A stretch of DNA of 64,000 bases from NCBI GenBank assembly GCA_030704615.1, contig CM060732.1, forward strand, positions 55,614,001-55,678,000, in the 5' to 3' direction. Shown here one piece after another: positions 4,543-64,000 of this stretch. Each line of letters opens with the position of its first letter. Positions within the stretch are counted from its first letter, which is position 1. The notes below the pieces were generated by a model. The model saw nothing but the letters and a program-made list of their open reading frames with translations, was not told the DNA's origin and did no database searches. Source of the DNA: Takakia lepidozioides (lineage: Eukaryota; Plantae; Bryophyta). Made by a program: the position numbers and the translations under genes.

Positions 4543-5035
4543 CAACCACGGGACGCGTCTCCTACCTCTAAGTTTGCTGGACTTAAGGTTGCAGTTACAG
4601 AGGACAATTGGGAGCCTGACATTGGACCCATTGTCACTGGAGGAGAGAGACGACGTATATGGCGATTCCTGAGGGCTTACAGAAATTGCTTTGCCTTCAG
4701 TTTGAAGGATTTGGGAGCACTGAAGGGTCAGGAGATTCGTATTGAGTTGGCCATGAACACGCCAATCTTTCGGAGACCCTATAGATACAGTGACATGGAG
4801 AGGTCTTTGATTCAGATGAGGACTCGAGAGCTCTGGGAGGCTGGTTTGGTGGAGCTCTCTGGTGGAGAGTATACTTCAGCCACGGTGATGTCAGCCAAAA
4901 ATGATGTCTATGGCAATTGGACGGAGAGACGTATGTACGGTGATTACCGGCCTATAAATCGTCAGACCAAGTCTGATAAGTATGCCATGCCCACACCGGA
5001 GGAGATCTTTGATGCCATTGGGCATGCCAAGGTGT
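4543..5035 (+). pseudogene. Linker and RT N-terminus (inside the inverted segment), in frame after TAG 4540-4542
   Basis: PIFRRPYRYS...RMYGDYRPIN...DKYAMPTPEEIFDAIGHAKV; joins TLDLWSGY on the minus strand at ~3540. Confidence 0.88.
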
Positions 5036-6693: not shown

Positions 6694-6878
6694 AAATCCC
6701 ACGGTTATAGGCCCCTCGGGTATAGGCACCATTTCTTTTGTAACTTGCTATGTGGGTCCAAGGTGATGTGGCGGGGGTACGCGCTGATGTGGCACTGTTG
6801 TATGTGGGGTCACGTCACGTCAGCAAAGTGTGGGCATGGGCTCACACGTTCACATGCTACGCTCACGCCGTAGGGTCG
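6694..6878. mobile_element. Terminus of a DNA-transposon-like repeat, same family as 47297-48784
   Basis: AAATCCCAC.GTTATAGG...TACGCTCACGC.GTAG.GTCG shared with 48617-48784. Confidence 0.55.
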
Positions 6879-24211: not shown

Positions 24212-26457
24212 TTGACCATGACCACTGCTTTTGAAAGGAGACCCAGAAAAGGAGTCAACAAGAACTCTGCTGGCACTTGTGGGAATGCGATGACATTATG
24301 TAAGGTGGGAAAACTGAAAGAGGCACTTCAAATTTTGAACCAGCAAGGCATTTCAGCAGATGCCAATACTTACATCTGTCTCTTGCAGGAGTGTATCAAA
24401 ATTAAAGACCTAGAAACAGGAAAGGAGGTGCATGCCCATATAATCCAAAGTGGATTCAAGCCAGGCGTCTTTCTTCTGAACACGCTTATCAACATGCATG
24501 CCAAGTGTGGGAGCGTGGTGGATGCACGTCAAGTGTTTGACCTAATGCCTGAACGAGATGTCTATACTTGGACTATGATGATAGCAGGATATGCCCGCAT
24601 GGGCATGGTAAGGAAGCTTTTGAGATCTATGAACAAATGATACAAGAAGGAGTGACACGCAACAGGGTTACATTCATCTGCATTCTCAAGGCTTGTGCCA
24701 GCCTCAGAGCCTTGGGAAAGGGCAAAGAGATCCATGCTGAGATCACCAAAGCTGGAATTGGGCCATATATTAATCTGAATATCCCTTGTTAACATATATG
24801 CAAAATGTGGGAGTATGAAGGATGCACATCAAGTGTTCCACAAGATGACTGAAAGAGATATGTTCTCATGGAATGCTATGATTTCAGGATATGCTCAACA
24901 TGGGTGTGGTAGGGAGGCTGTGGAGATTTATGAGCAAATGATGTGCGAAGGAGTGAGCCCTGACAAAGTCACATTTATCTGTGTTCTCAATGCATGTACT
25001 AGCCTGGTAGCCCTGGAAAAGGGCAAAGTGGTCCATGCTGACATCGTCAAAGCTGGATTTGGGCCTGACATTATTCTGGAGACTGCTCTTGTTAGCATGT
25101 ATGCAAAATTTGGCCAGATGAAGGATGCGCACCAGGTATTTGATAATATGGTCAAACGAGATGTGGTCTCATGGAATGCGATGATTACAGGATATGCTCA
25201 GCATGGATGTAGTAGTAGGGAGGCTTTTGAGATTTATGAGCAAATGATTCTGGAAGGCGTGAAGGCCACAAGGGTCACATTCATCTCCCTCCTCAATTCA
25301 TGTGCCAGTCTAGGCAGCCTGGGAAAGGGCAAAGAAAGGGCAAAGAGGTTCATTCTGAGATTATCAAAGGTGGCATTGTGGCAGCCATCATTCTGGAGAC
25401 CACCCTTGTCGATATGTACACCAAATGCAGAAGCATGAAGGATGCCCATCAAGTGTTTGATAAGATGGCCGAACAAGATGTGGTCTCATGGAGTGCAATG
25501 ATAGCAGGATATGCTCAGGATGGCTCTGGGTGGGAGGCTATCGAGATGTACAAGCAAATGATACAGGAAGGGGTGACACCAAATAAGGTCACATTCATTA
25601 GTGTTCTCAATGTGTGTGCTGGCCTGGCAGCCCTGGGAAAGGGCAAAGAGATCCATGCTAACATGAGCAAAAGTGGAATTGTGCCAGATGTTATTTTGCA
25701 GAATACCCTTGTAGACATGTTTGCGAAATGTGGGAGCGTGAAGGATGCGTGTCAAGTGTTTGAGAATGTCTAAGAGAGATGTGATCTCATGGACTGCGAT
25801 GATTGTAGGATATGGCCAGCATGGGTATGGTAAGGAGGCCATTCAACTGTTTGAACAAATGCAACAGGAAGGGTTGAAGCCAAACACCATCACATTTATA
25901 TCTCTTCTCTCTGCCTGTAGCCGTATGGGCCTAGTGGATGAAGGCCGTCACTACTTTAATTCCATGAGTGAAGATTATGGCCTGACTCCTACTGTGGAGC
26001 ATTTTGGCTGCGTGGTGGACCTTCTTGGCCGTGCAGGGCGATTGAATGAGGCAGAGGATTTTATTGACAAAATGCCAATTGAACCAGATGCTGGCGTGTG
26101 GGGGGCCTTTCTTGGTGCCTGCAGAACTCATGGCGATCTGGAGCGAGCAGAACGTGCGGCAAAATGCCTTCTCAATTCAGATCCACAGCACACTCCCACT
26201 TATATGCTGCTATCAAACATCTTTGCTGTGGCAGGAAGGTGGAAAGAGCAAGCAGAAGTGAGAAAAATGATGGTAGAGAGAGGTGTCAGAAAGGAGCCAG
26301 CACGCAGCTGCATTGAGGTGGACAACCAGGTGCATACATTTGTTGTAGAAGACAAATTGCATCCACAGATTGATGAGATTCATGCTGAGCTGAACAGATT
26401 GTCTGGCCAAATGAAGGAGGCTGGGTATGTTCCTGACATGCGCTTTGTATTACATGG
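24212..26457 (+). pseudogene. PLS-class PPR protein with E1/E2/E+ and truncated DYW (organellar RNA-editing factor type); about 4 frameshifts
   Basis: Repeated LV.MYAKCG..DA..VF..M..RDV.SW.AMI.GY; HFGCVVDLLGRAG; KEPARSCIEV; HPQIDEIH; GYVPDMRFVLH, then similarity ends. Confidence 0.9.
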
Positions 26458-27587
26458 TTATTTTCCCCCTCAAGCCCCAACGGCTGTGGCTTGGGTTTCC
26501 TTCAGAATGTATATATATCGGTATATAATAAGGGACTTCCTTTCTACATATAGTAAAATAAGTTGTAAAAGCAGGTCTTTTACATATTGCTAAAGCCAAA
26601 GTGACCATTTGGCCACTTCTAATCTTGCATTTACTGAGGGTGAGAGTGGTAAGTGCTCTGATAGTTGTAAATTGTAACGTATGAAGGAGCTCAGTGGTGG
26701 CAATATGAGATAGTTCCATGTTTTCTTTTCAGAATATTAATATTGTGTCTCTGGGCTGTGAAGTCAGATTCTGGCTCCCACGACCAAAAACGTAGTCTTT
26801 GCACCTCTGTTCACAAACTTTCAAACTGTCAAGACTGAGCCTAAAGCCCTGGCCCTGTCCCATTGACATCTTATAGTTTCTCTTCTGCTTTAGTTTAATT
26901 TTTGTTACCTGTTTCTGTCCAATAAAACTCTTTGTGCTGTTGTGGATCTACTCTCTTTATCTCTCTCTCTGGTCCAGCTTGTAACTTTAGTTTCTGTTCC
27001 TGCAGGTTCGGAAGCATTTGCTGATGCATATTCCTCCAGAACAAGCTCTGATCGGTATTTGGATTATGGGGCAAACAACATACATGAGCTCTTGAATGGT
27101 CACTGGCTTTGACAATACCCTCAAGAGCATAGCACCCTTGAGCTCTTGATCAGTTCAAGGTCAGATGAACCGCATGCCTAACCAGATATCTTAACATGAT
27201 TGACCCTATTTCTTGGAATCAAGACCATCCTCTTAAACTAGCAAAGTCCTTTTATTGTTTCCCGTGCATCTGTGTTACTTCTAACATGCTAAGCAAAATC
27301 ACTACTAGAGGCCAATAGGCATATGACATCCTGACGAGGCAATCCCGTACTGGGCCTTGATGACTAGTGGTTGATGACAAGGAGTTGTTGTGCTGGTTTA
27401 AAATCATGGACACTCTGATTCCAGGTGGAGGAAGAGAGCAGAAGGTTGCAACAGCAGAAATCAGCCTCACAAAACCGTGACTTAGTGGGAGAAATCCAAG
27501 ACCCAAACCAAGAGCCCCAAATCAGGTTTGGTAACTCTAGCTTGCTTGTCTTGCACATGGTCATATTAGACACATGCGAATCTCTTT

Positions 27588-33036: not shown

Positions 33037-36000
33037 TTACAACCTGGTGCAAACGTTGAACAGCAAAAATTGGTGTAGACACTGAGCTCCTTGTCTGTCC
33101 AAATGAGTGGGGTACCAATTACTGGTTGCGCCGTGGCAAAGTATTTCCATGCGATATGTCCTTATAGAAAATGTCATCAAGTCGAATTTCTGTGTTGACA
33201 AATTGGTTGCAGGCTGCTGCTTGAAACCATGAACGAATTTGAGAATCCTTCTGTATTCATAACTTTTGGGTTCATATAGGTACATATGAGGTGGCACCGA
33301 AGGTAATACCCAATGTCTCCACTGGAGTAACTTTGAAAGCGTGCTTGCATCTTTGTTGCTCAATGTGGTAACGTATCAGAAAAAACCAGCAGCGTAGTAT
33401 AGCCCGCACCCCATGACAATACTTGCTACTCCTTGGTCCTTGCTCTGGTATAAATGAGTCCATGTACAACCTGGAAAGCAAACCAATTCCCTTCAACATT
33501 GTACCTGCCTCGTGCCAGTATTGTGCAAAGTGATGATCTTCAATATGTCGATTGTTTGGAAGAACTTTAGTCCTGGTTGCCACTGGCAGCCAAATACGCA
33601 TGATTTGGTAGTAATGTGCGAATGACTGCGGAGGACTAAATTCTTTCCAAGCCAAATCCAACATGAATGGAATTTGGTTGAAGGGCATAATCATAGCCCT
33701 ACTGTACTCCCTGGCAGCTGGAGTTTTAGGTGGGTTAAAAGCTGCATTGCCCCATACCTCCGGCTGTGGTGGCTGTGGTGTGGTTGTAGTAACCACAGGT
33801 TCAGTTACTGGTACACTGACCTGTTGTGGTGGTGGTGGTAGTGGTTCCTGTACCATTGGCATTCTTGCACCTCCTGTGAAGACTGAAAAGCCAGAGTTCT
33901 GGCTTTCAAATAAGAAGCCATTAGCTGTTCCCGAGGGATATAGACTCTTTGGTCGATGTTTGAAGTGAGGTCTTCCACTTGAGTCTGGAGTCCGTCTACA
34001 TCCTCTTGTAACTCTGCTATCCTACTATAGACATTGTCTATAGTAGTTGTGGCAATGTTCTGCACCTGCAGTCTAAGCTCATTCATCTCGCTTTGGGTGA
34101 GCTTCCGTGGGGCTTTGCCTTCTACTGGCCCTTGTGCTAGCCAGACCTGCATAAGGCTGTTATCCACCAAGCTGCTTGTGGTTCCCCTGAGAGTTTGCTC
34201 CTCTCTTAGCTTATACAATTCCAACTGCTGTTGTAAATCCTTCATGCGCTTCGCCTGTGGCTCAACCAATTGCGCATAGGCAACAAGTAGATTATTGGCT
34301 TCTTTCGAAGCCTTGTTACTGATTGAGATTTCATTTCTATTGGCCACGATGTTTTGTTGCAACTCCACGATGTATTTCTCATTCTCAGCTTCCATCTGCC
34401 TGTATTGCTTGAGAGTATCTTCATTGCGACAGATTGTATTCTTCATATCGACAATGAGCTTCATGTGCTCCGCATTCTCTTCTTCTGCCTTCGTACATTT
34501 TTCCGCTTGACTGTTTATTTCTTTTGTTGATTGGTCAAGCATAGTTGTAATTGTAGCGCATTGTATTGCCATCCTGTTATGCACTGTTTGCAACTCCGTA
34601 TGTAGTGCATTCAGTTCTTGCAACTTGCTTTCATGCTGCACCTGCATTTGGTATAGCTGTTGCTTATGTGCTTCGTGCAACTGGTCTTGCGCGAGGCCTG
34701 CCTCAATCAATTGTTGCTTGGCTAATTGCAAAGCCATTTCTGTATTGGCCAAGTCCTGCTTCATCTTGAGAGTGACCTCTTCATCGACCTTGTTTGCACA
34801 CTCAGTGGCAAGTCGAGCCTCAAACTCCTTCCTGAGTTCTTCTTTCAAGGCTGTCAATTGGGTAATTGGAACATGGGTTTTGACATAAGTCCCCAACAAA
34901 TTAAGTGTCCTGCCTATGGAACTCATCAGCATTTCCTGTTGAGGGTCATCATGGTGAGGTTGCTGCTGTTCCTCCCGATCTTCAACAGTATGATGTCTCA
35001 CTAACCATTCAGACCATTGTCCCACCGGATTTTCTTCCTGAACTACTTCATTCATGACCGGTGCTACAGTGTCATGGCCTTCTGCCTGTGGTACCTCCAA
35101 CACAGGTGTGTGCATTATATGCACCTCAGGATTTCCTTTGGGCAACTGTTGCACCTCTGGGATTTCTGTCTCCTTTACCAGACCAGAATATTCATAGAGA
35201 AGGTCCCCTTTCTCTATTTCTGCCACTATCTGCTCTGTAGTTGGAATCTCTATCCCTTCACTTTCCAAATCAATTATTTCGGTTTGAGCTGCATGGATAA
35301 CTTGTGACCTTGTGACAAGTCGTTCAAGTGGCTGTGTTGGTTGTGATGCAGAAGTAACTTCTTCCTCCCTCTCTGAAGGTCCTGCTTCCAGTAATAACAT
35401 TCTTTTGTGCTGCTGTGCCCCTTCCTGGTTATGAGCTTGGGAAACATTATCATGCGGAATCCGTGAAGCCAGTGGATCCGCCACTACAGTCTTTCCCCTT
35501 CTCTGCCTCTTAGTCTCTGGTTGTGCTGCTAGTCCACCCTCACTGTGTGAAGAGCCTTGCTCTTCCATTGCATTGCAGTTGTTTCTGGCTCAAACACTCC
35601 CATTTCCTTCCTTTCTTGTGCATTAAGTATGCCCGAACTAAGGATTATTTGAGCAATGATTGGGCCAGACACTATGATAGGAGATTTTGCGGTAGTACTT
35701 TGTAATCTTTTCATCTCCTCTACCAGTGCGTTGTACATTATGTCCGCCCATAGTACCTCTTGTCCCTTCAAGCCTTTGAGGATTTCCTCTGTGAAGGATT
35801 TGCTCAAATATTGTTGGTTCTGTTTCAGGGCAATCAGAACGTTCAATACTTGGCTTATGTCTTTTAACCCTGGGTACACAGCTTTGGTACAAGCATAACC
35901 CTGAGTTTTAAAGAAACTCCCTTCTTGGAATAAATCCCCTATTTGCAGTCTTTCCCTGTGTTCTTCCACATACACATGACCTGCTGGCAATGAAACAATT

Positions 36001-36230
36001 GCTGGAGGTATAGGGGAGTAATCATTAATTCAACTCCCTTCACCGTTGTTGTTCCTGTCTTTGGCTCAAAGTTCTGCAAAAATTGTAACATGTACTGTCT
36101 ATGGTGTAGTGTCCAATCCTTGCTTTGCAATCCTTCCAATCTCAGCTCCTTCAGTATCTTTGTCGCCTGTGGGGTAGCCATCGTTTGTTTCTGCAGAATG
36201 GTGGTGCTCTTCACCCTGATTTCCTCCATT
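33037..36230 (-). CDS. Long extra 3' ORF of gypsy B (frameshifted pieces; central coiled coil)
   Basis: Overlapping ORFs 35939-36541, 35529-35990, 33805-35568, 33272-33862, 33037-33363 on the element sense strand between IN and PPT; E/Q/K/L-rich heptads. Confidence 0.65.
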
Positions 36231-37052
36231 CCTCTCACTCTCTTCATCTTAGACTCACCGAACTGCTTTGGCTGTAACAACTGCAGGAGTGCCTGTAGTG
36301 CACAAAGCAGAAACGTATGGTTGCCGCAGAAAGCTATGGGTAACCTCTTGTAAGCCTGCGGGGCTTGCAAGCATTGTTCAAGAGAAAAGCTCTGCTCTTT
36401 CGTTTCGTGTCTCTGCCACTGCGTAAGTAATATTGCGAGCGTAATGTCTGTTAGTTCCTCCATAGTTTCCAAGTTATAGCATTTATGGCCTGTCCTGTCG
36501 AGACGCCCGTTACTCTGAACGACGCCGCCTCTTGCGCTCAATTTCCCTCCATTTTCTTGATCATTTTTCTGGTTTTCTATTGGCTGTGGCCGCTGTGACT
36601 GGATTTTAACTTTTATCTTCTTTAGTGGACTTCCCTGTTGGATAGTCCACTAGGATCACACATGCGACATGAATTCGGCTTTTCTGTACTTGCCGTTCGT
36701 TCTGTTTCCCTTTTTCCGTAATCATTAATGGGTCCGCCTTTCATCCCTTTTGACGGCCGTTCTTGTCCTCTTTCTTTTTGACACCTGTCCTTGCACTTCA
36801 TTCTCTGCTGTTGTCGCACCCTGACCTCCACGTGTCTATTTTTAAATTAATTTCCGTTTCTTCTTCCTTCAGCCATTTTACTGAAGTTTTTATGTGTCCA
36901 CTTGTCACTGATTCTATGGATCGTGTAACTTTAGTAGGCTGTCTTGAGCTGTGATAGGCTGTGTTGCACTGTGGTAAGCTGTGATAGGCTGTGACACGCT
37001 GCGGTAGGTTGTGATAGGCTGTGTCACGCCTTGCTGGGTTGTGGTTGCTGTG

Positions 37053-40000
37053 TCACGTCGTGACGCTGTGATAGGCTGTGTCACGTCGTGACGGGCTGTG
37101 GTAAGCTGTGTTGCGCCTTGCTGGGCTGTGGTTGGCTGTGTCACGTCGTGATGGGCTGTGATAGGCTGTGTCACCCGTGATGGGCTGTGATAGGCTGTGG
37201 TGCGCCTTGCTGGGCTGTGGTTGCTGTGTCACGTCGTGATGTGTGTGATAGGCTGTGTCACGCCTTGATGGGCTGTGATAGGCTGTGTCACGTTTGTTTT
37301 GCCCACCCCGGTCATATATACTGGGCCTAGCGACAAGTGTTCCATACTCCGTTCGTAACACTGGTGCAGCCCGTGACTGCTCTTGCGGTTCAACATGCAA
37401 ATCATGTTGCAGGGGTTTGTCATGGATACCACTGTACCCCTTCAACTTATTTGCATTGACTCTTCCCAGCATTTCCTTGTTAATGGTTTGTAACATGGCT
37501 GTGTTGTTATCATACATCTTTTGTATGACATAAGGTCCTTTCCATGGTGATTTAAGCTTAGAAGCTTGAATCTTTCCTTTCTTCTGCAACCATAAAACCA
37601 AATCCCCCGTCTTAAAAGTCTTTAATTTGCCTTTATCAAACTGTTCCTTTCGCTTCATCTGAATTCTGGTCATATTATCAGCTGCATCAGCACGTACTTC
37701 TTCCACATGGTATAATTCATGTTTCCTGACCTTGATGGAGTCTTGCAATTCCATTCTTTTTCCCCACTCTGTTCTCATGGTAGGTAACAGGAATTCCACT
37801 GGAAGTAAGGCTTCCATACCATAAACTAATTGGAATGGTGTATACTTAGTGGTGACTTTATATGAAGTCCTGTATGACCACAAAGCTGTCAGCAGCTTTG
37901 TATCCCAATCCGTTCTGTTTGCATTGACTATCTTAGCCAAGATAGTACATAGTATTTTGTTGGTAGCCTCTGCCTGTCCATTACCCTGTGGGTAATATGT
38001 TGTACTCTTTCTATGCACAATCATAAACTCTTTAGTCAATAACTCAATGGTCTCATTCATGAAGTGACTTCCTTGATCACTGATAAATTCTAAGGGACAT
38101 CCAAATCGTGTAAGTATGTTCTCGTACAGGAACCTTGCTGTGGACTTGGCTGTGTTGTCCCTCAAAGCTTTAGCTTCCACCCACTTTGTAGTATAATCAG
38201 TGGCTGTAATTATGTACCTGTTTCGTGTATTCTTGGATGGTGGATTAATTGGTCCAACAAAGTCTAGTCCCCATTTCTGAAATGGTTCCGTAGGCATTGT
38301 AGGATGCAAGGCCATTCTTCCAGATCTCTGCAAAGGTCCTAGCCTCTGACATTCATCACACTTCTGACAATACTCATGTACATCTTTGAACAACGTAGGC
38401 CACCAGTATCCTGCGAGTAGTATCTTTCTACTGGTAGTCTCTTCTCCAAATGACCTCCAGCCACTCCTTTATGAACTTCCTCCAAGACTTTATTTACTTC
38501 ATGGTGGTACAAGCATCGTTTTAGTACTCCATCAGGTCCTAACTTATACATTCTGCTTCCTACCATAGTATAAGGTAAAGCTCTGATAGCAATTCTTTTC
38601 CTTTGCTCCTTACCATAACTAGGTGGGCACTGACCATGAGCAAGGTAGTATCTGATTGGCCATTGCCAATCTAACCATTCATCTGCACTTCCTTGCACCT
38701 CCATTACAAATAAACTCGCATCAGGTAACTGATCGTCCACTCCTGTGGCGGCCTCTCCTGTTGTTAGTCGTGACAAATGATCTGCCACAAGATGCAAACG
38801 GCCAGGCTTGTAAATAACCTCGAACTCAAACTCATGCAAGATTATTAACCACCTCGCTATCCTTCCACTTATCAAAGGTTTGTTCACCAGATATATCAGA
38901 GCCTGGTGATCCACATAAAACATAAACTTTCTTCCCAATAGGTAATGCCTGAATTTCTTCACTGCATAGATCATTGCCAATGCTTCTCTTTCCGTTGTGC
39001 TATAGTTCCTCTCAGCACTGTTCATCAACCGGCTAGCATAGTACACAGGTGAATCTATATTCCCTGTAACATTCTGGGCTAACACCGCTCCCAATGCTTC
39101 TCCTGATGCATCGCAGTGAACATGAAATACTACATGCCAGTGAGGGTTAATCAGCACAGGTGTAGTTGTTACTGACAGTGTAAGTTCCTCAAACGCCTGT
39201 TGACATTCAGCTGTCCATGCAAACACTGCATCTTTCTTCAGAAGCTTGCTCAATGGTGCTGCTATTTGTGCATACCTTTTGACAAATCTTCTGTAATAAC
39301 TGGTTTGCCCAAGGAATCTCCTTAAACTCTTAACATTCACTGGTGGTGGAGAGACTTTAATGGACTCTGTCTTCCTGGGATCCACAAGAAGTCCCTTCTT
39401 ACACACTATGTGTCCCAGAAGCACCCCTGAGTTCACACAGAAAGTACACTTCTCTGGATTCAAGCCCAGACCTCTCATCCTGCATCTGGCCAGGCATAAC
39501 TCCAATTTATGCAAGTGCTCATTCTTAGAGCTGTACACACTGAAATCATCCAAAAACACCTGCATGAAATCATCCAGATACTCTTGAAAAGATTCACTTA
39601 TCACTCTCTGAAAGGTCGCTGGTGCATTACAAAGTCCAAAGGGCATGACTTTGTATGCATAAGCCCCCCAGTCTGTGATGAAAGCTGTTTTCCCTTGGTC
39701 TTCTTCTGCCACTTGCACTTGATTATAACCACTGAAGCCATCCATGAATGAGTACATCTCATGGCCTGCCACAGTGTCTAATACTGCTTCTGTGAATGGC
39801 AAAGGGAAAGGATCTTTCTTCGTACAAGCATTCAGCTTCTTATAGTTCACACATACTCTTAGTTTGCCATTCTTCTTGGGAACTATAACAATGGGTGACA
39901 ACCAAGTTGTATACTCTATTGGGTATATAAACTTAGCCTCAGCCAACTTCTTTATCTCTTCTCCAACCTTCTGTGCGTAGTTGGGATTCATTCTATACCT

Positions 40001-43000
40001 CGCCTGCTTGATTGGCACTGACCCTGGTTCCAGTTCAATTTTATGCTGACAGACTTCAGGTGGTATCCCTTTTAGATCCTCATAGCTCCAAGCAAATACA
40101 TCTCTGTATTTGATGAACAAGCTTTTAGCTTCTTCGAAGAATTCCGGCTCCAAATCAGCTCCTACTTTCACCATCCTTGGTTCCTCCGGAGTTCCCACAT
40201 TTACTTCTCTCACCTGCTCATCAGCTGTGATTGTCCAACCAGTCACCACTTCATCCTGTAAGCTCACAGTGGCTGGTTCTTCTAGGATTTCTATTTCTCC
40301 TTCTCTTTCTTCATAGAAATGTGATGGGTAAATGCTGGTTTCTTCTTCCGTTGGTGTTGCTGTCACTACACCACAGCAGATACCTCTCAAACAACTTAGG
40401 CTTTCCAGCCGCATCTCTGCAACTTGCTCCCACTCTGGGTGTGCAGCAAATAGGGTAGCTTCCTGCTCCTCATCCAGTCCTCCCTCCAGTCATACTCTCT
40501 GACTCCTCGAGGTCTTCTTGTAGCAGGTAATCTACTAGATTTCTTTGTGGTAATTTGTATCTCGTGCATCCCATTATGCACAGTTAGTAACTGAGAATTC
40601 CAGTCATGGAATACCCTGGCCTGTTTCAGCCACGGACGTCCCAATAATAAGGAATAAGCCTCCATGACTTCATCCATTTTTAATACAGTTACTGTGATCA
40701 AAAGATCATTTTCTGTATCTGTATCTTAACTCCTCTTATTAATCCCAATGGCTGTACACTTCTTTGATCTGCCATTGTTACTGTAAATGGGGCTGGTTTC
40801 ATGTTACTTAGACCAAGCTTCTTCCTTAATTGGTCTGTCATGATATTTACTCCAGAACCACCATCTATCAGTACATCAGTTAGTTCTGTGCTTCCAATTC
40901 TCAATTGGATTACTGGCATAGAATCATCAAAGTCCATGACTGGTTCTCGCCCTTCCGGCTTCACATTATAACTGGTCACCTTGCTGTTCAGGTCTGTGTT
41001 TCCTGTTTCTTGGGCAATTCGATTGATTGCCTGATACAGCCTGTGCCTACAATAAGGTGCCACAGCTAATAGCTGTCCAATGGTAATTTCTGCTTTGGTC
41101 TGACATATTACTTCAGCCAAAGTCTCTTCATTACTTTGCATGTCTGCATCTTTTTTTCTCCTTTCTTCCTCACTCTCCTCTTTTTCTCCATCCGAATCAG
41201 AGGAATCTGCCACAGGAATATCAGTACTCTTTTGCATTTCCCTTATAGTATCTGCCACTTCCTTGTGCAGTTCCTTCTCATCCTTCCAAGTCTCTTCCTC
41301 TTCAGGCATATCATTGCCACTTCCAGTCTCATCTTCTTCCTCTTCTACTGGAGGTATTAGTTTAGCTTTACTTCTTGTTACTATCATTGTACTTACTTCT
41401 GGTACAACACATGGCCTAACCATGTGAGCTGCCACCACTGGGCCCTCATTCACAGGAGCTCTCATCTCATTCTGGTGTCTTATCCAGAATGAACAGGCTG
41501 CCTTGCGATGTCCTGGCTGATTACAATAGTAACATAGCTCTTCACCATTGGGTCCTCGCCCTTGGTCTGGTCTTGGATTATTTCTATAATCCTGATTCCC
41601 GGGCTGGTAATTCCCCTCGGATTACCCTGATAGTTGCCTCTGGAATTTCCTTGGTAATTCCCTCTTGAATTACCTCTTCCTTCCATGCCATTGTTATAAC
41701 CACCAGACCTACCATAGTGGTCCTGATCATTGCTTCTTCTTGGCTGGGGTTGCACCTGATGCACCCTCACTTGCCTAGGTTCTCTGGCAGCTGTCCTTCT
41801 GTTGTAGTAACAATTCTCAGTAGAATGGTTATCCATTTTACAGATAGTACAGTGTTTTCTCCTTCATGTGGCATTCTGTAGTGGTATGGCCTTCATTCTG
41901 GCACTTTGCACACCATACACCCTTCCTCCAATGTGTTGCAGCCTCTGTGGCATACTTCTTCAAGATTTCTTCCAATCTTTTCTCATAGTTATCCCTCTTC
42001 AACTTTTCCTTTCTCTTACTCTTTCTTTTTAGTTCTTGCTCTTCTTCTTCATCTGACTCATCTTCAGAGTCCTCATCTTCCTTTTTCTCTCTCCTGAGCA
42101 TTCCCAATTGCTCAATTCTGTTCGCAGTTTCAAATGCCTCCTCCACTGTATTATGGGGTAACATATCCACTTTCTTCTGCAACTCTGGTCTTAGTCCACT
42201 CACAAACCAAGTCTTCTGTAAACCGGGTGCTGGTACTGCAGCCAGCTTTTTCATCATCAATTCCATCTTCTCCATATACTCTTCAACAGTTTCATGCTTC
42301 TTCTGCTTCAGCTGTTGTAAACTTCCATACACTTCATCCTCAGTTTTACTTGTCCTGAACCTATTTCGAAATGCTGTATTCAAGCCATTCCAGGTTAGGA
42401 AATGATTATCAGGGAATCTTGCATACCATTCACTTGCTTTCTTGATAAGTGAACAAGGAAACAGTCTCATCTTGGCATCATCGCCATTCTCATTGTTCAC
42501 TATACACATGTGCTCAAATTGGCTAATGTGTACATCGGGATCCCCTTTTCCTGAATATATTGGAAAGGGTGGTTTTGCCCGTGTTGGTTGTAACGCCATC
42601 TGTGGCCCTACCTTCTGCCCACTGACAGGTGCTGGCACCCTTGCTGGTGCTGGTCCTTCTGGACCTGTTGTTTTTGTGGTGGATCTTCCACCAAGTGGTG
42701 GCCCTTGAGCACTCCCTGCTTCTGGCCCCACGATATTCACAGTATTCCCAGCTTCAGTTGCACTACTTCCCACACTCCCTGTCCCCCCAGAGCCAGATCC
42801 AGGCAGCCCGCCTGATCCCCCTGAGCCGACACCTTCGTTGGCCTGTGATCCAAGTGCTCCACTTGATCCAGGTCCAACGGGTTGGGATGTCCTGGTTGTA
42901 GTCTCAACCTCAGCTGTTGGGTCTACTTCTTCATATTCTTCCTCTTCCAATTTCTTCTCTCTGTTTTCATCATTCAAGTTCTGCCCTTGGGTTTCTTCTT

Positions 43001-43430
43001 CACTCATGTAACTCAACTGTAATGGTGTTGGAGAGTCTGAACTCTCCGTTGGCTCTGCCACATCCTCATCTCCTTCTTCATCTTCTGCTTCAGAAACTGG
43101 AGTTCCTGCTTTTGGTGTTCCATGCCAACTTTTATCAAAGATTTCTGTCAAATCTTTTATCCAAGGATGTACCTCAGATCTTTCACCTCTTGATTGATCT
43201 TCTTCCTGTACCAATTCCCTTAATCTTTCTTGCAAAGAAACAGAAGGAGTGGCATCCAACTCTAGTTCTTCCGGTATAGGTGATGCACTTTTTGATCTTG
43301 ATGGTGTGAGAGGTCCAGATGATTCCCCTATGTCTATTCCTCTCTCCCAAAGATATGGATAATTAGCTTTCAGATAGCTTTCCCTTTTTAATGAATATCT
43401 TTGTCGTCTAGCTTCTCTTTCATCACTCAT
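37053..43430 (-). CDS. gag-pol of full-length gypsy B, broken mainly by single-base indels
   Basis: Gag, CCHC knuckles, LIDGGSG, FLDD, RNaseH, HHCC/DDE integrase, GPY motif; no chromodomain. Confidence 0.92.
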
Positions 43431-54166: not shown

Positions 54167-57030
54167 CATACATGCATGCTTGACTGTGCGCCATGCTAGT
54201 TTTGTGTGGGCGCTTGTTTTTATAAGTGATTGGTCCGGATTTGATCACCGGCCAATCCTAGAGCATGTTGTCCATGGTGAGGCTGGGGTGATGACCAGCC
54301 AGACCATCATTGTTTCTCATGTGGTGAGGTTGGAGGTGATTACCAACCAACCATAGGAGTGCTTGCGGTGGATGCAGGTACATGTGTAGGCTATGTTATG
54401 AACTTAGTATTCCAAACCATAAGCCGCAACAGGTTCTCTACCCGGTTACCTTGTGGAGAGGGGGTTAGGGACATGTTCATGACCGGTTGAGTGTCAACAC
54501 GGAGGTGCCACTAGTTGCTAGGGACAGTGCCGGTTCAAGCACTAGCGATACTAGTGGGTACACGAGACGAGGTGTGCGGTTTAGGCCACCTTTACCTCCT
54601 GTGTCTTCTACGGAAGGTTCTGATTCGGATTGTGAATCAGGAGGACTCATACCGGCGGTGTTTCCTTGCCATTGTTGTGGGACACAATGGATGAGATGTA
54701 TGGAGCTACCAAGGGGCCACGAAGGTACTCTGGGGCGGTGGGCACCATCGAGTTGGGATGATTTTATCCAAGAGTTTGATAGTTGGTGTGATTTACAGCA
54801 AATGCGCAATCCACAACTATTTACGCCTTTCATGGCATGGAAGGGGCTGTTTCAGCACCTTGAGGGGCCGCCTATGGATGATTACCATGAGTTCAGGCGG
54901 GGGCATGAGGTTGAGATTGAGGAGTGGAGGATGTACTGGTCACCCGACTATGTCTCCATCACTAGGGGCACTAGAGCCATGAGGGCAGTGGCTACACCTG
55001 CCGCTGCACCGGTAGCTTCAACAAGCAGCAGTGGGACTAGTAGGACTGGTGGTACCGTAGCTACGACGTCCACCCAAGCCACTACCGCACCAGCACCAGC
55101 ACCCGTGCCTGCCTTCAACCCTGTTGTGGAGTTCTTCGAAGAGTTGAGAGGAAACTACCAAGGGGTGAGGACAGAGAAGTTGCGGAGCTTGCAAGAGTTC
55201 CAACGGAAGCCGATCGAGAGCTTGAGGGAGGCTTTCACTCACATGAGGCGCTTGATAAATGTAACCCAAGGGGTTACGGAAGCTCAGGCAATCCAATTTT
55301 GGTATGGGATATTGGACAAGGAGCTGAGGAGAAGGGTGCAGGATGCAACTCTCCTACAAGCGGCCCAACCCACCTTAGCAAATGTGTTTTTGCTGGCAGA
55401 GCGGATAAAGCTCAACATGGTGGAGGAACGAGTGGTCATGGTGGGATTTGCTAAGGAGACACCACGGGGTAGTGGTGCTCCTAGCCAACCACTACCTCAA
55501 CGTGCTCGAGGCAACAAGGGGGCTCAGGTGAAGCTTAGGGAAGGGCAGAGAGGACCTCAGATGCATGGGTCTCTCCCTTCATTTGCTGGCCAACAACGGG
55601 CGGATGTGATGTGCTGGATATGTGGAGGACCCCATGTCAAGAAGGATTGCCCAGAGGGAGGCAAAGGGTTGGCACATACACAACCTGCACAGTTGCAGTG
55701 TGGGCATTGTGGCAAGCACGGGCATGGAGAGGCCCAGTGTTATGGTTTGCATCCTGAGTTGCGCCCAGACCAGTTCCAAGGGAACAATGGTGGCCGGGGG
55801 CGAGGTGGAGCAGCCCAGAGAGGACGAGGTGGCCAGTCACGAGGTGCAGGCCAAGGGCAAGCTCAACATGGCCAAGGACGCGGAGGTCAGGGTGTTGACA
55901 AAGGCATGGCCAACCGGCTTCAGCAGCTAGAGCAGAAGCTCACTGCCATGGCTACAGCTCAGGTGGTACCGGCTCTAAGGCCGGATGATCCACCTCTTGC
56001 TCCTGAGGGAGGAGATATGGGAGGCATGGAATTCATCACTACAACAGATTGCGGCTCTTATGACTCCCATGGGTGCGCAGTCATGACAGATTTGTGGCAG
56101 AAATGCCATTTGCAGTCGTAAAATGCTTTTGAAGTCATAATGCAGGTCTGGAGAAGGCGTATATGCGACTGCATGGCTTCGGACTCTACGCAACACAGGT
56201 CAAACATGTTTGACCACGAATATTGGCATGGCAGATATGACTACCAGTCACGGTCATGGCTACACTGGAATGACGTGTGCATATTGCAAGACAGACATAT
56301 GACTTCATGACTCTCACTCTAATGCATTATGCCAGATCATCACATGGATGAATCACTACATGACTACACGTGTCGACACATGCTTTTCTGGTTATATATA
56401 TAATATATGAGTATTTATATCTTAAAAAAACAGAGACTCTTACCAACTAGGATGAATTAAAAAAAACCCAAAAAAAACAAAGATTTAAAAAAAATCACAT
56501 CGGCTGGTAAGTGCACAGTGTGTCGCCCTTGTGGTTTGGGGTTCAAACCCGCTGCCCTTATCCCGTGTGTGGGATTGTTCGAGACGGTATGTCTTGACGT
56601 TGATCGTCCTGTAGGTCATATGGCCCATAAATGAAGGCGGGTGAATTTTCCCCCTCCTCAAGGGCTTGTGGTTTCCTTTAAGAAAAAAAAAAAAAAAAAA
56701 AAAAATCAAAAAGGGGCTTTTAGGGTTTACAAAAAGGTTAAAAAACTTAAAAAGTTGCCCATCACGGTAGCGTGAACAGACTTAGAGCGAGCGGGAGGGA
56801 GGGAGAGAGAGAGAGGGTTGGGACTTAGAGCGAGCGAGCGGGAGAGAGGGCAAACATGCATGGGAGGCCCGCAGTTGGATCAACCTTCGCATCTGGAGCA
56901 AGCAACCCTAGAAACGCTAGGGTATGTGTGCGAGGAGGTTTCGGCTGGGAGCCCGCCGTTCTTGGGAGAGTCAGCTTCGTCTTAGCAGGCCGTGTTTCAA
57001 TCTCTACCCGCTCGGCCCTGATTTTACAGC

Positions 57031-59420
57031 ACGGAGCAGAGCTGGCATGACTTTCTAAAAGATCCTTCACGATGGTGGGACTACCGCAATCGCAAGGTGT
57101 GGCTTTTTCTTAATGTACGATGTGAAGAAGTTTGTCCATCCTGCAAATGTGGGTTGGCTCTCCTGTTAGTACCATGATTTGGTATTCTTCCTGATGTTTA
57201 CAAGGTTCTTGGGAGAGTTAGCTTGGTCTTAGTAGGCCGTGTTTCAATCTCTGCCCACTCAGCTGCACCGTGATGGTTCTCACTGACCAATCCGACATTA
57301 CCTAACTACAGACACAAGCAGCACACACTAGAGGTCATCTTGGGTTCATGTTCAGTCAAATCCTCCATGGGTCATGACACAAGATCGAGGACAATGTGGT
57401 GAGGGCACCTTCTTCTTCGACCTATTTCAGCCTATTTTGCCCTCTCATCAGACTCGGCCTTGAATTTGAATCATGGAGCAGAGCTGGCATGAGTTTTTTT
57501 AAGATCCTTCACGAGGGTGCGACCGCAATCGCAAGGTGTGGTTTTTTTTTAATGTACGATGTGCAGAATTTTGTCCATCCTGCAAATGTGGGTTGTTGGC
57601 TCCTGTTAGTACCATGATTTGATATTCTTCCTGATGTTTACAAGGTTCTTGGGAGAGTCAGCTTGGTCTTAGCAGACCGTGTTTCAAAGTCTGCCTGCTC
57701 AGCTGCACCGTGGTGCAGGTTCTCACTGACCAATCCGACATTACCTGACTACAGACACAAGCATCACACACAAGGTCAAATCCTCCATGGGTCATGACAC
57801 AAGGTCAAGGACAGTGTGGTGAGGGCACCTTCTTCTTCGACCTATTTCAGCATGTTTTGCCCTCTCATCAGACGCCCTGAGATGCATATTGAATTTTGTA
57901 AGTTAGCTCATTGCTCGTTGATAAGTAGGGTTGGGGGTGTTTGCTGGAACAATTCTAGGCTGTCATTGTCAGCTGCTAGCAGGAAGGCAAGGATGTATGC
58001 ATAGATAGCTGAAGGATTTTGTGCAGAGGCATAGATAGCTGAAGGAGCAGGGATAGAGTGTGGGCCCAAATTTGTCCAAGAGGGCCGGATTTCAAGCTCC
58101 ATTATTTCAGTGTCATCCATTCAGCCAGGGATTTCCTGGTGACATTGCCAAGGCTTTACTCGCAACATGATGCTTGTAAAGCTTCCTTAGCTTGAATGCT
58201 GATTATGCTTGAATTATTAGGTTTGTAAAGCCAGTTTTGAAATTTTCATGGTAATCAGCTCTCTTGAAAATCTGTAGGTTGCAAGCCATTTACAGCGGGT
58301 CGTGGGTGGACTGGAAGACAGCCATTGAAAGTCCTGGTGCAAGTTAATACCAGTGGAGAGCAGAATAAGCTTCATATTCCCTTTTGGTGCTAGTTATGTT
58401 CATGTATGGTACTGTTGAACACCAACAATCTTTTGGTGAGATTCTGTCTTGGTGCACATGTCTGATAAAGAAAGACGGTAATGTTTGTTCTGAAACCTGA
58501 AGGCGTGAAATGATTCAACACAACAAGAGCATTACGCGTGTCACAGTACAAGCTGTAAGAAAGCAAGAGATACATAGTTATACAGTCAAACAGACAACTA
58601 TCAGTTTCTGTGGAATCTCTTGCCAATGGCAGGATGGGTTGGGAATAGCCAAGTCAGGAGGTGAATGCTTGTCAAATTACCACATGTCCTTTTGAACACT
58701 GCCCCTGCCCTGGTGGACATGTACGCCAATTGTGGGTGCATTGAGGATGCAAAGGGAGTGTTCAACACTGTGGCTGAACGAGATGTGGTGTCGTGGAGTG
58801 CGATGCTTGCTGGGTATGCACAGCTGGGGTGCGGGATGGAGGCTCCAACCTTTGAGAAAATGATGGGGGAAGGGGTGAAGGCCGCCGACATAACGTTTGT
58901 GTGCGTTTGCAGCCCTGGAAAAGGGCAAAGAGATCCCTGGTGACATCATCAAATCTGCAATTGTACCAGATGTCATCCTGAACATGGCTCTGGTGGCCAT
59001 GTATGCTAAATGTGGGAGCATTGAGGATGCCAAAGGAGTGTTCAACACTATGGCTGAACTAGATGTGGTGTCGTGGAATGCGATGCTTGAAGGGTGTGCA
59101 GAGCAGGAGCGCGGGATGGGGCTTTGGACACCTGAAAGCAAATGATGGAGAAAAGGATGAAGGTACCTTCTTCAACATATTTCACCTTGTTTTCCCTGCT
59201 AGTGTTTGCTTTGACAATTCTAGGCTGTCATTGTCAGCTGCTAGCAGCAAGGCGAGGATGTATGCATGATTTGTGCAGAGGCATGGATAGCTGAAGGAGC
59301 AGGGATTTCGTGTGGGTCCCGATGCATCCAAGAAGGCCAGATTTCAAGCACAAGATTACCTGTGATTCCCTGTGGATCAATAGCTACAAGAAACCTGCAT
59401 GGGTAGATGGTCAACTGGGA
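57031..59420 (+). pseudogene. Fragments of OSB-type PDF motif exons
   Basis: TEQSWHDFLKDPSRWWDYRNRK|GT (57031-57096, duplicated at ~57475); HPRRPDFKHKITCDSLWI...PAWV (59320-59410). Confidence 0.7.
58690..59150 (+). pseudogene. PLS-PPR motif fragments
   Basis: ALVDMYANCGCIEDAKGVFNTVAERDVVSWSAML; ALVAMYAKCGSIEDA...SWNAML. Confidence 0.85.
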
Positions 59421-62384
59421 GCAGCGGCACAAGTGATAAAATCAGGCACTGCTAATGAAGGCATCTTCTTCAACACATTTCACCCTGTTTTTCCCTCTTA
59501 TCAGAATCGGCCCTAAATTTACATGTTCAATTCTGCAAGTTAGCTGGTTGAGTGAATCTAGTTTGGAGTGACTTTGACATGATACTGCCAATGTGACAAC
59601 AGGAAAGTGTCAAAAAATAGGTAACAGAGATGAAGAGAAGCTGTGGAATGAATACTTATCTGAGCCCAGTCACTGATGGGTCAACCGGGGCAGAAAGGTG
59701 AATGCCTGCTACATTTCAGAGAGTAGCGGACGCAATTCAGCATAGGAACTAGTGTGCTACGCTGAGTTGGGTGTTTCCTAGAACAAATGTAGGCTGTCAT
59801 TGTCAGCTGCTAGCAGCAAGGCAAGGATAAATGCTTGATTTGTGCAGAGGCATGGATAGCTGAAGGAATAGAGATAGAGTGTGGGTGACGCAGGGTGCTG
59901 GGCAATGGGCAAGATGTCTTTGTATAAACGTGAGTGACATTTTTATCATCCTGGGTTTCATTTTTAGTGCATGTTTCTTTGTGAAGTATCTGACGACTTC
60001 GCCAATACACACCAACCTTTTTGCTTTGGTTTGTTTAGGACATGGGATAGAAGTTACCATAAACAACACTGGCATTGGTTTTTCATATATGGTATTAGAT
60101 AATTCTCTTAATTGTTTCCGCCTTGGCACGTTGCTCAGTGACCTTCCCTGGACGCCTTGGAGTATAGCGAGTGAGTGTCTCACAATGCAATATTGGTTGG
60201 TGCATCTTATGCAAGAACTTGGAAAACAAACAAATGTCCTTGTTGTAGTAATTCTTAAAGCCATGCAAGCCGTTTTTGATGGGTTGCAGATTGATGGAAT
60301 ACATGAGTAGTTAGAAGATTATGGGTGAACACTTTTCAAAGTGTTATAGTTAGACAAAATAATTCACATGAGAACATGCGACTATTTAATGTATTTTTAG
60401 ATTGCAACAAAAATAATAATGATAAATAGATTGATGGTATGCAATCTCTTGGTTTTGCTCAGCTTGTTGCAGTTATGTCTTGCTGCCTTGTTCTCTTTGT
60501 ATTACATATTATATTTCATTGTTGTAATAGACATGTACATGACTGCTATCATAGTCATAATAATGACTACAACACCTCAGTTGGTCTTACCCCCGGCGTC
60601 GCAATCATGGTAGCCGAGAACAATGGAGCCTGACACACAAATGTAGCCGCTCCTAGCAGCACACTAGCTGCCGTAGCCTTGGCAATACTAGGTAGTGGTG
60701 CTACCCGTGTAGCTCTCCCCAATGGCATAGTAACCTCCGCCTCGGTAACAGTCGGGCGAGAACTAGGTGCCATGGATGGCGTCGACATTGTCTCCGCCAA
60801 TGTGAACGACTGAGGAAGCCTAGCCTGACAGCTTGCCTCCCCACACTGTGGATCCAACTCCACCCATCAGCAGATTGACATGTGTCATGATGGGTTTTGG
60901 GGTGTATTGCTATTTTTTACATATTTGTATTTCTGCCACGTGGTGTAGTACTATTGGAGAGTGGCAGCTACACTCTATGAGAGTGTGGAGGTTACTTCGT
61001 CTACTGCGGAGATAGTGGGAGGTGTAGTGCCGGAGGGATCCTCGGATTTGAGGGTCAAGACTGCCACGGCGGCGCCATGGCAAGCTGCAGCTGCCAGGTT
61101 GATGGAGCTGCCAGCTAGGCCAACCATTGAGCGCGCCATGGTGACATCTGGAGTTGTCATGTTAGACAACCAGGATGGCATTTTCTGTTTGAGTGGACCG
61201 GCAGGCAAGAGGTACCGGCCATTGCGGGTCTTATTGGACTCGGGAGCTCAGCCATTGATGCTAGGCAGAGCTGTTATTGCAGGCTTGGGCCTCACGGAGG
61301 CGGATATGGAGCCTTGTCCTTTCCAGATATAGACGTCTCTGGGAGGATCGGAGCAGGCTCGGGGCATGACACGGCGTGAGTTGGCTATCAGACTACGGCC
61401 GGATCACCCTACAGATGGCTCAGTGATGCGAGCCAAGGCCATTGTGACAGACGCGGTCTCATACGATGTCCTGGTTGGTGGGGCAGTGTTGTACCCCATG
61501 GGCTTCACCCTGGATTTTTGGGAGGAGTCAGCTTCCTATAGGCCTGCATGGCAATCAGGGGAGGGCCGGCAGCTCCCTGTGACGTTCATAGGAGGAGTTG
61601 CGGTTGCCCAGCGAGGCAAGATGCCGACACTAGCAGCATTCACAGCGGCAGTGAGTTGGCCTAAAGAGTTGCTTGAGGGCAACCACGTGTAAAAACTGAA
61701 ACGCGCCACGTGTTGCAACCGGATTAGCACACTCGTAGTCATAGTTTGCAGCCATGGAGAGCTAAACACTCTGCCACGTGTCATTTCCTGCATCGAGCAC
61801 GTGCCACTCTTGCACAGCCGCTGACATGGACTACACTGTCCGTTCAGTCATTCAGTAAAGCTAGCGTGTATGACTACCCCCACAGCTGCTCTGGCGCAAC
61901 GTGACAGCCAGCCTGGAGAGTCATATCTGCCATGTCACAACTGACTAGGTCTTTACGTCTGCAGAGTCAGAAGGTCGTAAATGGCTTCCATGACTGCATT
62001 TGCAGTCATAACACAGAGACGTAAAAGCCGCAATTTGTTGAAGTGCATGTGTGGAGCAGCACTACCACTAGTGCAGGTGGAGTCTGCTGCAGCCGTGACT
62101 CGAGGAGCAGCACGAGTTCCTGAGCCATACGCTCATTCAGAGGATGTGCCACCTCCGGGAGAGCAGGATGACATGTATGGTATGGCGGAGTTACCTACCA
62201 TGGTTGCTCAGACTCCATTGTGGGGCACGAGCAAGGATTTGCAGCGGGATGCTGATAGACGGGTGCAACAAGCCTGGGTGGAGGCTTTGGTACTATTAAG
62301 AGAGGAGGAGAGTGCGGGGATTGCACCAGGACCACCTCAGTTATCTCCATTGGACACCACACCTATTGTGTGGCAGTATTCGGA

Positions 62385-63350
62385 TGAAGGCATTTGTCTT
62401 CTCGACTTGTTTGGCGGGATCAGCACCGGATTGGCTGCTGTGATACAGGCAAGTGTACGGGTTCGGCGTTACCTATATGTGGAGAGGGATGAGACTGCAC
62501 GACGCGTTTCACTTCACCATGTTGGTCAGTTGGTGCAGCGGTACCCTGAGTTGTTGTCGGTGTCTGCAATTCGTGGATATCAGCAGGCCTTGCCAGCAGA
62601 CAATTCGTTGCTGGGGGCGCAGGATTTGGAGCGGGTTGGCTCCACTGATCTGGTAGTGGCAGGTTGGCCTTGCCAAGGGCATTCATCAGCCGGGCATGGC
62701 AATGGATTGCGAGACTTGAGGTCGGTCTGTTTTAGGAGATGATGCGGGTTTTGCGTCACTTGCAGCTTCATCAAGCTGTATCTCCAACATACATCTTGGA
62801 GAATGTGCCATTGATGGGCGATTCTCGGGCCAGGGTGATGGCCAGTGTGCATCAAGTCCGGTCGTGGCTTGGGTCAGCAGTGTTGCTAGATGCAGCTACA
62901 GTGGGGTCATGGGCTCATCGTCCACGGCTATGGTGGACTAACCTGATGCCACCTGCACTGCTCAAGCGTGCATTTGATGGGGTGCAGCGGCCAGCACATC
63001 TCACAGTGGATAGCATTCTGGACACAGGGAGGCAGTCTCAGTGTGTGAGACACGATGACCGTTCGCCTTTGGCAGTGGTCAACAAGGTGGGTCAACCACG
63101 AGCAACATTACCTACACTGTTCAGCTTCCCAGGATCGCATGCTTTCCGGGATAGTGGACCTGGCCTCCTGTGGGATGCTCAGTTGCAGCAGTTAGTGGAG
63201 CCTAATGCTGACGAGCGTGAGCGGGCAATGGGTTTTACCACTGGTACCACGGCGGTGTCGTCTCTTTCTGAGGCATCACGTCATCAAGTGTTGGGGCAAG
63301 CAATGGATCTCAATTGCTTGACCTGGATTATCAGCTTGGCTATGGCTGAG
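62385..63350 (+). pseudogene. Complete-length DNMT3-like C5-cytosine methyltransferase domain (one frameshift near 62727)
   Basis: I LLDLFGGISTG; II YLYVERD; IV DLVVAGWPCQGHS; VI YILENV; VIII AHRPRLWWTNL; IX ERERAMGF; X RHQVLGQAM. Confidence 0.92.
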
Positions 63351-64000
63351 CAACGCAGAGTGCGGAGTACACTTCCCTCGATGGTCTCTCTGCCTACCGA
63401 GACGGTACAGGCAGTGAGTGGGGGCGAGCATGTGAGGACCACGGGGTGCAGACATCCATGGCACACGTGGGAGGTGCTCGAGGTTCAGAGGGAGTTGGCA
63501 GCCAAGGTGGCGATGAAAGATGAGGTTGGGGATTTTTCTCGGGTGGAGGAAGTCCTTGAGGATAAGATGATGGGGCAAGATGAGGCCTTGTCACTGACTG
63601 AGCAGGTAGGGAGTACTGCTCAAGAGGTTGCAACATAGCAACCACTGGACGCGTCCTCTACCTCTAAGCCCACTGGACTTAAGGTTGCAGTTACGGAGGA
63701 CAATTGGGAGCCTGACATTGGACCCATTGTCACCGGAGGAGAGAGACGACGTATGCGGCGGTTCATGAGGGCTTACAGGAATTGCTTTGCCTTCAATTTG
63801 AAGGACTTGGGAGCACTGAAGGGTCAAGAGATCCGTATTGAATTGGCCACTGACACGCCAATCTTTCGGAGACCCTATAGATACAGTGACATGGAGAGGT
63901 CTTTGATTCAGATGAGGACTCAAGATCTCTGGGAGGCAGGTTTGGTTGAGCTCTCTGGTGAAGAGTATGCTTCAGCCACAGTGATGCCAGCCAAGAAGGA

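Follow-up and report, generated by a model that had tools for sequence, protein, structure and literature searches.

A conserved UAG-CAR-YYA junction between DNA methyltransferase and reverse transcriptase in a land-plant Ty3/gypsy clade points to TMV-type stop-codon readthrough

Retroelements need structural protein in far greater amounts than enzyme, and the strategies known for this are frameshifting, readthrough, splicing and degradation. In murine leukaemia virus, a gammaretrovirus, the UAG between gag and pol is read through; a downstream pseudoknot is needed for this and the protease is encoded after the stop. Avian sarcoma/leukosis virus has its protease in the upstream, abundant frame, and the recoding site, a -1 frameshift, is located between protease (PR) and reverse transcriptase (RT).

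In plants, type I readthrough is classical for tobamoviruses, in which the stop stands in the context UAG CAA UUA (consensus UAG-CAR-YYA); the CAR YYA is reported to be essential for UAG readthrough of tobacco mosaic virus (TMV) in plants, and for type I contexts 11-32% readthrough was determined in planta (PMC2754532). For SIRE1, a Ty1/copia element of soybean, stop-codon suppression between pol and an env-like ORF is described (Havecker and Voytas, 2003, as cited in PMC2829016). In Tca2 of Candida albicans, which is organized as gag-UGA-pol, the junction sequence alone did not direct readthrough in yeast (PMC2194720). Gypsy elements carrying a DNMT3 are known as KnitGypsy-Dnmt3 from Klebsormidium nitens (PMC5890265) and as 'Gypsy-DNMT3' from streptophytes (bioRxiv 10.64898/2026.05.21.726589). 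In the literature searched, no mention of a stop or of readthrough in DNMT3-carrying Gypsy elements was found, and a literature look-up of Mp4g09160, SRR327418, SRR11802611 and GCA_017884025 yielded nothing.

The window analysed here, a stretch of 64,000 nucleotides from the moss Takakia lepidozioides, contains two copies of a retroelement in which an in-frame TAG CAA CCA is located on the plus strand between a DNA methyltransferase (DNMT) domain and the RT, at 4540-4548 in copy 1 and at 63636-63644 in copy 2. Based on the comparison with related elements we regard it as highly probable that this junction TAG represents a TMV-type programmed readthrough site in a Ty3/gypsy clade with a DNMT3-like domain between protease and RT.

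In copy 2 the putatively leaky TAG (63636-63638, +) is the sole in-frame stop between the anchor motifs GQAMDL of the DNMT and FRRPY of the RT, the latter 76 codons downstream. It terminates the open frame 62739-63635, which comprises the C-terminal half of a C5-DNA-methyltransferase domain with its ENV and GQAMD motifs. The following CAA CCA (63639-63644, +) matches the CAR-YYA type I readthrough context, and the frame runs on to the end of the window as the N-terminal part of ORF2 (pre-RT and RT, 63639-64000, +; 71% identity to Marchantia ORF2 residues 14-114). In copy 1 the corresponding stop, likewise proposed to be leaky, stands at 4540-4542 (+) and the hexanucleotide at 4543-4548 (+); 170 in-frame RT codons are open after the TAG (4543-5052). 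The first-pass annotation had reported a TAG at the same codon of both copies, followed by CAACCA and by the RT in the same frame, within flanking codons that differ, the other stops it compared being private to one copy, and the sequence confirms this: upstream codons are GCG GCA in one copy and GCA ACA in the other, downstream codons CGG and CTG, and the other lesions (a frameshift near 62740 in copy 2; an 83-nt deletion and inversions in copy 1) are copy-specific. As both copies are 90-92% identical over the junction stretch, a common 9-mer is expected by descent. TAGCARYYA occurs six times in the window against 4.2 expected occurrences, a number reached by 24 of 100 shuffles. Within the window the shared motif is therefore no more than chance or shared descent would give, and its significance comes only from the in-frame position at an ORF junction and from conservation throughout the family. 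Two similar, decayed copies prove little on their own, so the question was settled with relatives.

The window copies were mapped by tblastn against an intact Marchantia relative, whose ORF1 and ORF2 residue numbers are used throughout, and the broken copies entered the comparison unrepaired. Copy 1 belongs to the minus strand and consists of four pieces in the right order, the first and third of which are inverted in place. The first (12432-14354, +; weak Retrotrans_gag match and tblastn) encodes the Gag part with two CCHC knuckles, ORF1 residues 1-595, and is interrupted at about 14355, where an unrelated Ty3/gypsy element is inserted. It stops where the second piece starts (5946-5032, -; tblastn), which covers the protease and the N-terminal half of the DNMT (residues 596-905), so that Gag is parted from the protease exactly at residues 595/596. 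The third piece (3539-5040, +) contains the C-terminal half of the DNMT in a broken frame (3539-4539, tblastn), the TAG and the N-terminal part of ORF2 (4543-5040; 73% identity to ORF2 residues 14-160). The fourth (3543-1628, -) resumes with the RT from its LDLxSGYHQ motif onward, RNase H and integrase (1819-3543; RVT_1 E=1.9e-28, Integrase_H2C2; 74% identity to ORF2 residues 160-738) and terminates with the PHD-finger end of ORF2 (1628-1822, -; 65% identity to residues 976-1040). ORF2 residues 739-975, a part of the integrase, are deleted.

Copy 2 lies on the plus strand. A Gag-like N-terminal part of ORF1 at 54697-55959 (49% identity to residues 7-415), located in the open frame 54487-56121, probably belongs to it; intervening sequence of about 5 kb separates this part from the remainder. 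A small inverted piece (60571-60864) lies near the same Gag/protease point as the break in copy 1; the inversions of both copies could be due to rearrangement or to an assembly artefact. The protease region follows at 60955-61683 (residues 546-791, tblastn; 91% identity to the protease segment of copy 1) and the DNMT domain at 61981-63635 (weak PF00145 match; 59-67% identity to residues 789-1243). The latter has motifs I and IV in 61981-62739 and motifs VI to X in 62739-63635, which are different frames, hence the frameshift near 62740. In Pfam searches the DNMT C-terminal half and the RT N-terminal pieces of the window gave no matches; their domains were therefore identified by motifs and by comparison with intact relatives. 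A public read-set assembly contains a third member of the family (L001, 89% identical), which also has TAGCAACCA and a frameshift of its own. Damage is thus found in each of the three copies that represent the window's own family. Both window copies are decayed, rearranged and non-functional relics in which the TAG site is a fossil, and the readthrough mechanism applies to the family, not to these two copies today.

The state of these copies recalls a caveat of the first-pass annotation, namely that the TAG might be a CAG>TAG change inherited from a dead master copy. On this reading the change, CAG>TAG or a similar one, would be inactivating and the CAA CCA coincidental. Three decayed copies of about 90% identity and a motif which alone is not enriched in the window are what such an origin would leave behind.

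Further elements of the window comprise a PLS-class pentatricopeptide-repeat (PPR) gene with E and E+ motifs, of the RNA-editing factor type, in two adjacent frames at 24815-26590 (+). Its best database relatives (Ginkgo, Cryptomeria, Sphagnum, Diphasiastrum) are only 50-61% identical. Diverged PPR-like repeats are found at 58678-59163. An ordinary Ty3/gypsy element (Gag with CCHC, PR, RT, RNase H, IN) at 14347-19629 (+), interrupted by a few stops, is inserted in the Gag fragment of the DNMT element; directly after it, at about 19550-20120, the translation contains a tandem repeat of roughly 10 residues. A second large element of Ty3/gypsy type occupies 33800-43430 (-), with Gag/Ty3 capsid at 41841-43430, RT-RNase H at 38342-40414 and integrase at 37056-38393; a 587-aa ORF in its downstream part (33808-35568) had no Pfam match.

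A protein search with the C-terminal half of the DNMT detected 159 relatives of 45-89% identity in Calypogeia, Marchantia, Riccia, Sphagnum and many metagenome ORFs. Many of them terminate at the alignment position of the window TAG, despite a linker that varies in sequence and length. Junction DNA was taken from 80 metagenome loci and from the named genomes, and 47 distinct copies from outside the window, belonging to Marchantia, Riccia, Calypogeia, Sphagnum and metagenomes, had the junction covered. The stop is kept in 46 of these (37 TAG, nine TAA, no TGA). The junction reads TAG CAA TCA in Calypogeia fissa, TAG CAA CCA in Riccia sorocarpa, TAG CAA CCC in Sphagnum jensenii and TAG CAA CAA on chromosome 4 of Marchantia polymorpha, and other metagenome lineages have TAG CAA CTA, TAG CAG TTA, TAG CAA TCA or TAA CAA CCA. 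The only sense codon is a TAC (Tyr) followed by CAA CCC in a decayed Sphagnum-type copy (L027, around 6834-6850); tyrosine has been reported as the amino acid that plants incorporate when UAG or UAA stands in the TMV context (PMC2754532). Inspection of about 60 private stops showed CAR-YYA after a single one, as many as expected for a 1-in-512 motif. This chance fit is a premature in-frame TAA with CAG TCA at position 7748 of a Riccia copy (L083).

A second protein search with an intact ORF1 as query yielded many full-length ORF1 proteins of 1228-1451 aa, which start with Met and end just past the DNMT. Five loci are fully intact, with an ORF1 of 1278-1451 aa, the TAG and an in-frame ORF2 of 1043-1047 aa that is terminated by TGA in all five. 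L047 and L085 combine ORF1s of 1369 and 1330 aa with TAG CAG TTA and ORF2s of 1047 aa each; in L086 (1433 aa) and L087 (1451 aa) the junctions TAG CAA TCA and TAG CAA CCA precede ORF2s of 1043 aa, and in L088 from Marchantia an ORF1 of 1278 aa, TAG CAA CAA and an ORF2 of 1045 aa are found. Two more distant proteins known only as ORF1 (loci L089, L090) were fetched later as a prediction test. Both loci have TAG CAA TCA with an ORF2 that is in frame and open to the contig end. Thus the seven intact or open elements, which represent different lineages, all carry TAG, and a sense codon was not seen in young or intact copies.

The Marchantia element is located on M. polymorpha chromosome 4 (AP019869.1, 10227128-10242964), where only ORF1 is annotated as a gene (Mp_4g09160). 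Its 278-nt direct repeats are 10.4 kb apart and 99% identical, for which reason the element is probably young; a second, 113-nt pair surrounds the 3' repeat, and ORF1 starts about 2.9 kb past the 5' repeat. This apparently young, intact element has the TAG and the in-frame ORF2 as well. Within the 9.3-kb contig of L047 no terminal repeats were found.

The division into Gag-PR-DNMT before and RT-RNase H-integrase (IN)-PHD after the stop, as it had been read from the window at first pass, is confirmed by Pfam analyses of the intact relatives, with CCHC knuckle, aspartic protease and DNA methylase in ORF1 and RT, RNase H, integrase and PHD finger in ORF2. PF00145 is located between PR and RT in these relatives, and the best solved-structure matches of the element's DNMT are DNMT3A, 3B and 3C (E about 1e-7). 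The intact relatives together with the window pieces show the Ty3/gypsy domain order Gag(CCHC)-PR-RT-RNase H-IN, and in the RT tree the window family is placed with gypsy-type RTs. The integrase ends in a PHD finger where chromoviruses have a chromodomain (L047 residues 990-1034, L088 residues 996-1040, window 1628-1822, -), a feature suggestive of integration guided by chromatin or of a partnership with the DNMT.

For the analysis of the stop context, 12 lineage representatives were anchored at the stop without gaps. Counted over these lineages, the stop is T12 A12 G11, the next codon C12 A12 R12 and the one after it Y12 Y11 A11, whereas positions within 30 nt upstream and 36 nt downstream are conserved in only 4-10 of the 12, except for a few second-codon positions of the Ser/Pro/Ala-rich linker. 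UAG-CAR-YYA is thus a near-invariant island within a hypervariable linker. Ten of the 12 representatives fit CAR-YYA exactly, as do L089 and L090. The departures are CAA CCC in the Sphagnum-type subfamily, the largest with 30 copies, all decayed, and CAA CAA in the intact Marchantia copy. The codon after Gln is Pro (CCA), Ser (TCA) or Leu (CTA/TTA), so pyrimidines are exchanged for pyrimidines and the third base stays A. An amino acid that changes within a constant YYA is the opposite of constraint at the protein level and exactly the CAR-YYA rule. Downstream of the stop, RNAalifold (13 lineages, -6 to +125 nt, pseudoknots being beyond the tool) detected no convincing conserved RNA structure, the consensus having an energy of -0.55 kcal/mol and only seven scattered long-range pairs. 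This absence agrees with a type I signal and argues against one of the murine leukaemia virus type.

The reading frame is conserved across the junction. The distance from GQAMDL to FRRPY assumes 10 different lengths of 501-720 nt, all of them multiples of three, and each interval contains a single in-frame stop 70-78 codons upstream of FRRPY. An independent initiation of ORF2 would not need such a constant frame 0. This bears on the reading that ORF1 and ORF2 are two separate cistrons, in which the UAG would be a true terminator and RT-RNase H-IN-PHD would be produced by reinitiation, internal initiation or from a second RNA (internal-promoter or subgenomic). Sphagnum-type copies, in which an ATG stands two codons past the stop, would suit this arrangement, and so would the precedent of Tca2, with an internal promoter at the junction of gag and pol and no readthrough from the context alone (PMC2194720). 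However, across the lineage alignment no conserved ATG follows the stop, the window family having CTG, CGG or TGG at the site of the Sphagnum-type ATG, and the first Met of ORF2 lies inside the RT region (codon 117 in L047 and L085, codon 120 in L089). The codons before this Met are under strong purifying selection: between L047 and L085 dN/dS is 0.047 for ORF2 codons 1-116 (dS about 1.5), indistinguishable from 0.041 for the remainder of ORF2. Moreover, the conserved element is a known readthrough context and not a start context. We therefore consider separate cistrons improbable. As part of the readthrough reading it is very likely that ORF2 would be translated from the stop onward, in frame and without a start of its own. 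The case of Tca2, an in-frame stop without context-driven readthrough, is the reason why our confidence in programmed readthrough is kept at high and not raised further.

For ORF1, dN/dS values of 0.10-0.25 were obtained over three segments, hence both ORFs are under purifying selection between lineages with saturated synonymous sites. Conservation and selection extend over the stop with its context, the frame and both ORFs. On these grounds the suggestion of the first-pass annotation that UAG-CARYYA at the junction is a candidate for programmed readthrough is well supported.

Gene models of Marchantia (P0140, P0144, P0151) and Riccia (P0024, locus L083) pass from DNMT to RT by skipping the junction, as if a short intron containing the stop were spliced out. 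The stretch left out differs from model to model, as happens when a predictor evades a stop; it is in frame, with conserved phase, and is partly conserved as protein, and the lineage alignment shows no conserved GT..AG pair around the stop. Splicing as the means of joining both ORFs is thus very unlikely, and the bridging introns are probably annotation artefacts, by which the elements are mis-modelled as genes.

All stop-type elements are united in a single clade of the RT trees (SH-aLRT 99), with one change of state. The clade has two deep subclades, and the window family groups with liverwort and moss elements. Both trees exclude rows of less than 140 residues, e.g., Riccia L083, and the second also excludes four fused rows with long branches. 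Given a single origin of the stop, the lineages are replicates of its maintenance and not of this origin. Relatives outside the clade (proteins P0146, P0148, P0152 and P0153; loci L062-L079), located by BLAST anchoring of the fused proteins, have one continuous ORF of about 2300 aa for PR-DNMT-RT-RH-IN-PHD. Among the fused relatives, the one closest to the stop-type query by RT identity (L091, protein P0139) has TGG CAG at residues 456-457, at the position aligned to TAG CAR, an alignment which is only approximate in the variable linker; TGG is one transition away from a stop. Proteins P0154-P0162 (36-39% identical) have the RT near the N-terminus and still match the DNMT query region; the methylase of these elements may sit elsewhere, in a different architecture.

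Two decayed copies of the fused outgroup have a private CAG>TAG near the projected junction, and an inactivating substitution of this kind is what the dead-master origin assumes. These stops are not shared and are not followed by CAR-YYA, and they show how a chance stop looks. The junction stop, by contrast, is kept in the seven intact or open elements, persists between lineages with saturated synonymous sites whose two ORFs are both under purifying selection, has a context that is conserved more than the surrounding coding sequence and is found in liverworts and mosses alike. The clade is old enough to span both groups. The caveat is contradicted by the purifying selection on both ORFs and the age of the clade, and descent of the TAG from a dead master is exceedingly improbable.

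In these presumed LTR retrotransposons of the Ty3/gypsy type, from bryophytes and other land plants, programmed readthrough would operate as follows. Most ribosomes would end at the UAG and release Gag(CCHC)-protease-DNMT. A minority would read the UAG with a near-cognate tRNA, aided by the adjacent CAR-YYA, and continue in frame through RT-RNase H-integrase-PHD, giving a minor full-length Gag-PR-DNMT-RT-RH-IN-PHD product. The stop would thereby set the ratio of structural to enzymatic protein, like the recoding sites between gag and pol. That readthrough occurs, with which efficiency and with which effect on DNMT dosage, we infer from the conservation of the junction. Since the stop sits downstream of protease and methylase, the methylase would be made at the level of Gag, and RT and integrase, if this is true, at a few per cent to tens of per cent thereof; sister elements make everything from one ORF.

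A plant-virus-type readthrough signal would thus be kept in a whole clade of presumed land-plant LTR retrotransposons, at an unusual site past the protease and past a captured DNA methyltransferase. This bears on the role of transposon-borne DNMTs, e.g., in self-methylation of cDNA or in the manipulation of host silencing. As a tentative idea, which we hold with more doubt than belief, the shift of the recoding site past the captured methyltransferase may be adaptive: DNMT made with the Gag-PR precursor would be packaged in or near the virus-like particle and methylate the element's own new cDNA or the neighbourhood of the insertion, the PHD finger would read chromatin, and the strategy would predate the split of liverworts and mosses or have spread between them. 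The copy on chromosome 4 of M. polymorpha makes direct testing possible in a model plant.

Compared with the described systems, the junction resembles TMV type I readthrough in sharing an in-frame UAG followed by CAR-YYA in plant cells, an abundant short product before the stop and a polymerase-bearing extension after it (here as predicted products), and independence of a downstream RNA structure, none having been found in the elements analysed. It differs in its carrier, a presumed nuclear LTR retrotransposon known here from sequence and not an RNA virus, and in lineages with CAA CCC or CAA CAA. With murine leukaemia virus it would share the use of in-frame UAG readthrough by a retroelement for setting the structural-to-enzymatic ratio; however, no conserved structure was detected here, the signal is a hexanucleotide, and protease and DNMT precede the stop. 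A protease upstream of the recoding site, in the abundant frame, is also the arrangement of avian sarcoma/leukosis virus, in which recoding is a -1 frameshift and a methylase is lacking. Tca2, an LTR retrotransposon that also has an in-frame stop between an upstream and a downstream ORF, serves as a caution and not as a model. SIRE1, as far as the citing source describes it, is similar in arrangement, as a plant LTR retrotransposon with a single in-frame stop before a downstream ORF; it belongs to another superfamily, and its junction is pol/env-like instead of PR-DNMT/RT. KnitGypsy-Dnmt3 is likewise a Ty3/gypsy element with a DNMT3-like domain inside the coding region, which is described, however, within a Pol polyprotein ORF and with no stop or readthrough mentioned. 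The junction thus presents a known signal in a new carrier and at a new position, between PR-DNMT and RT.
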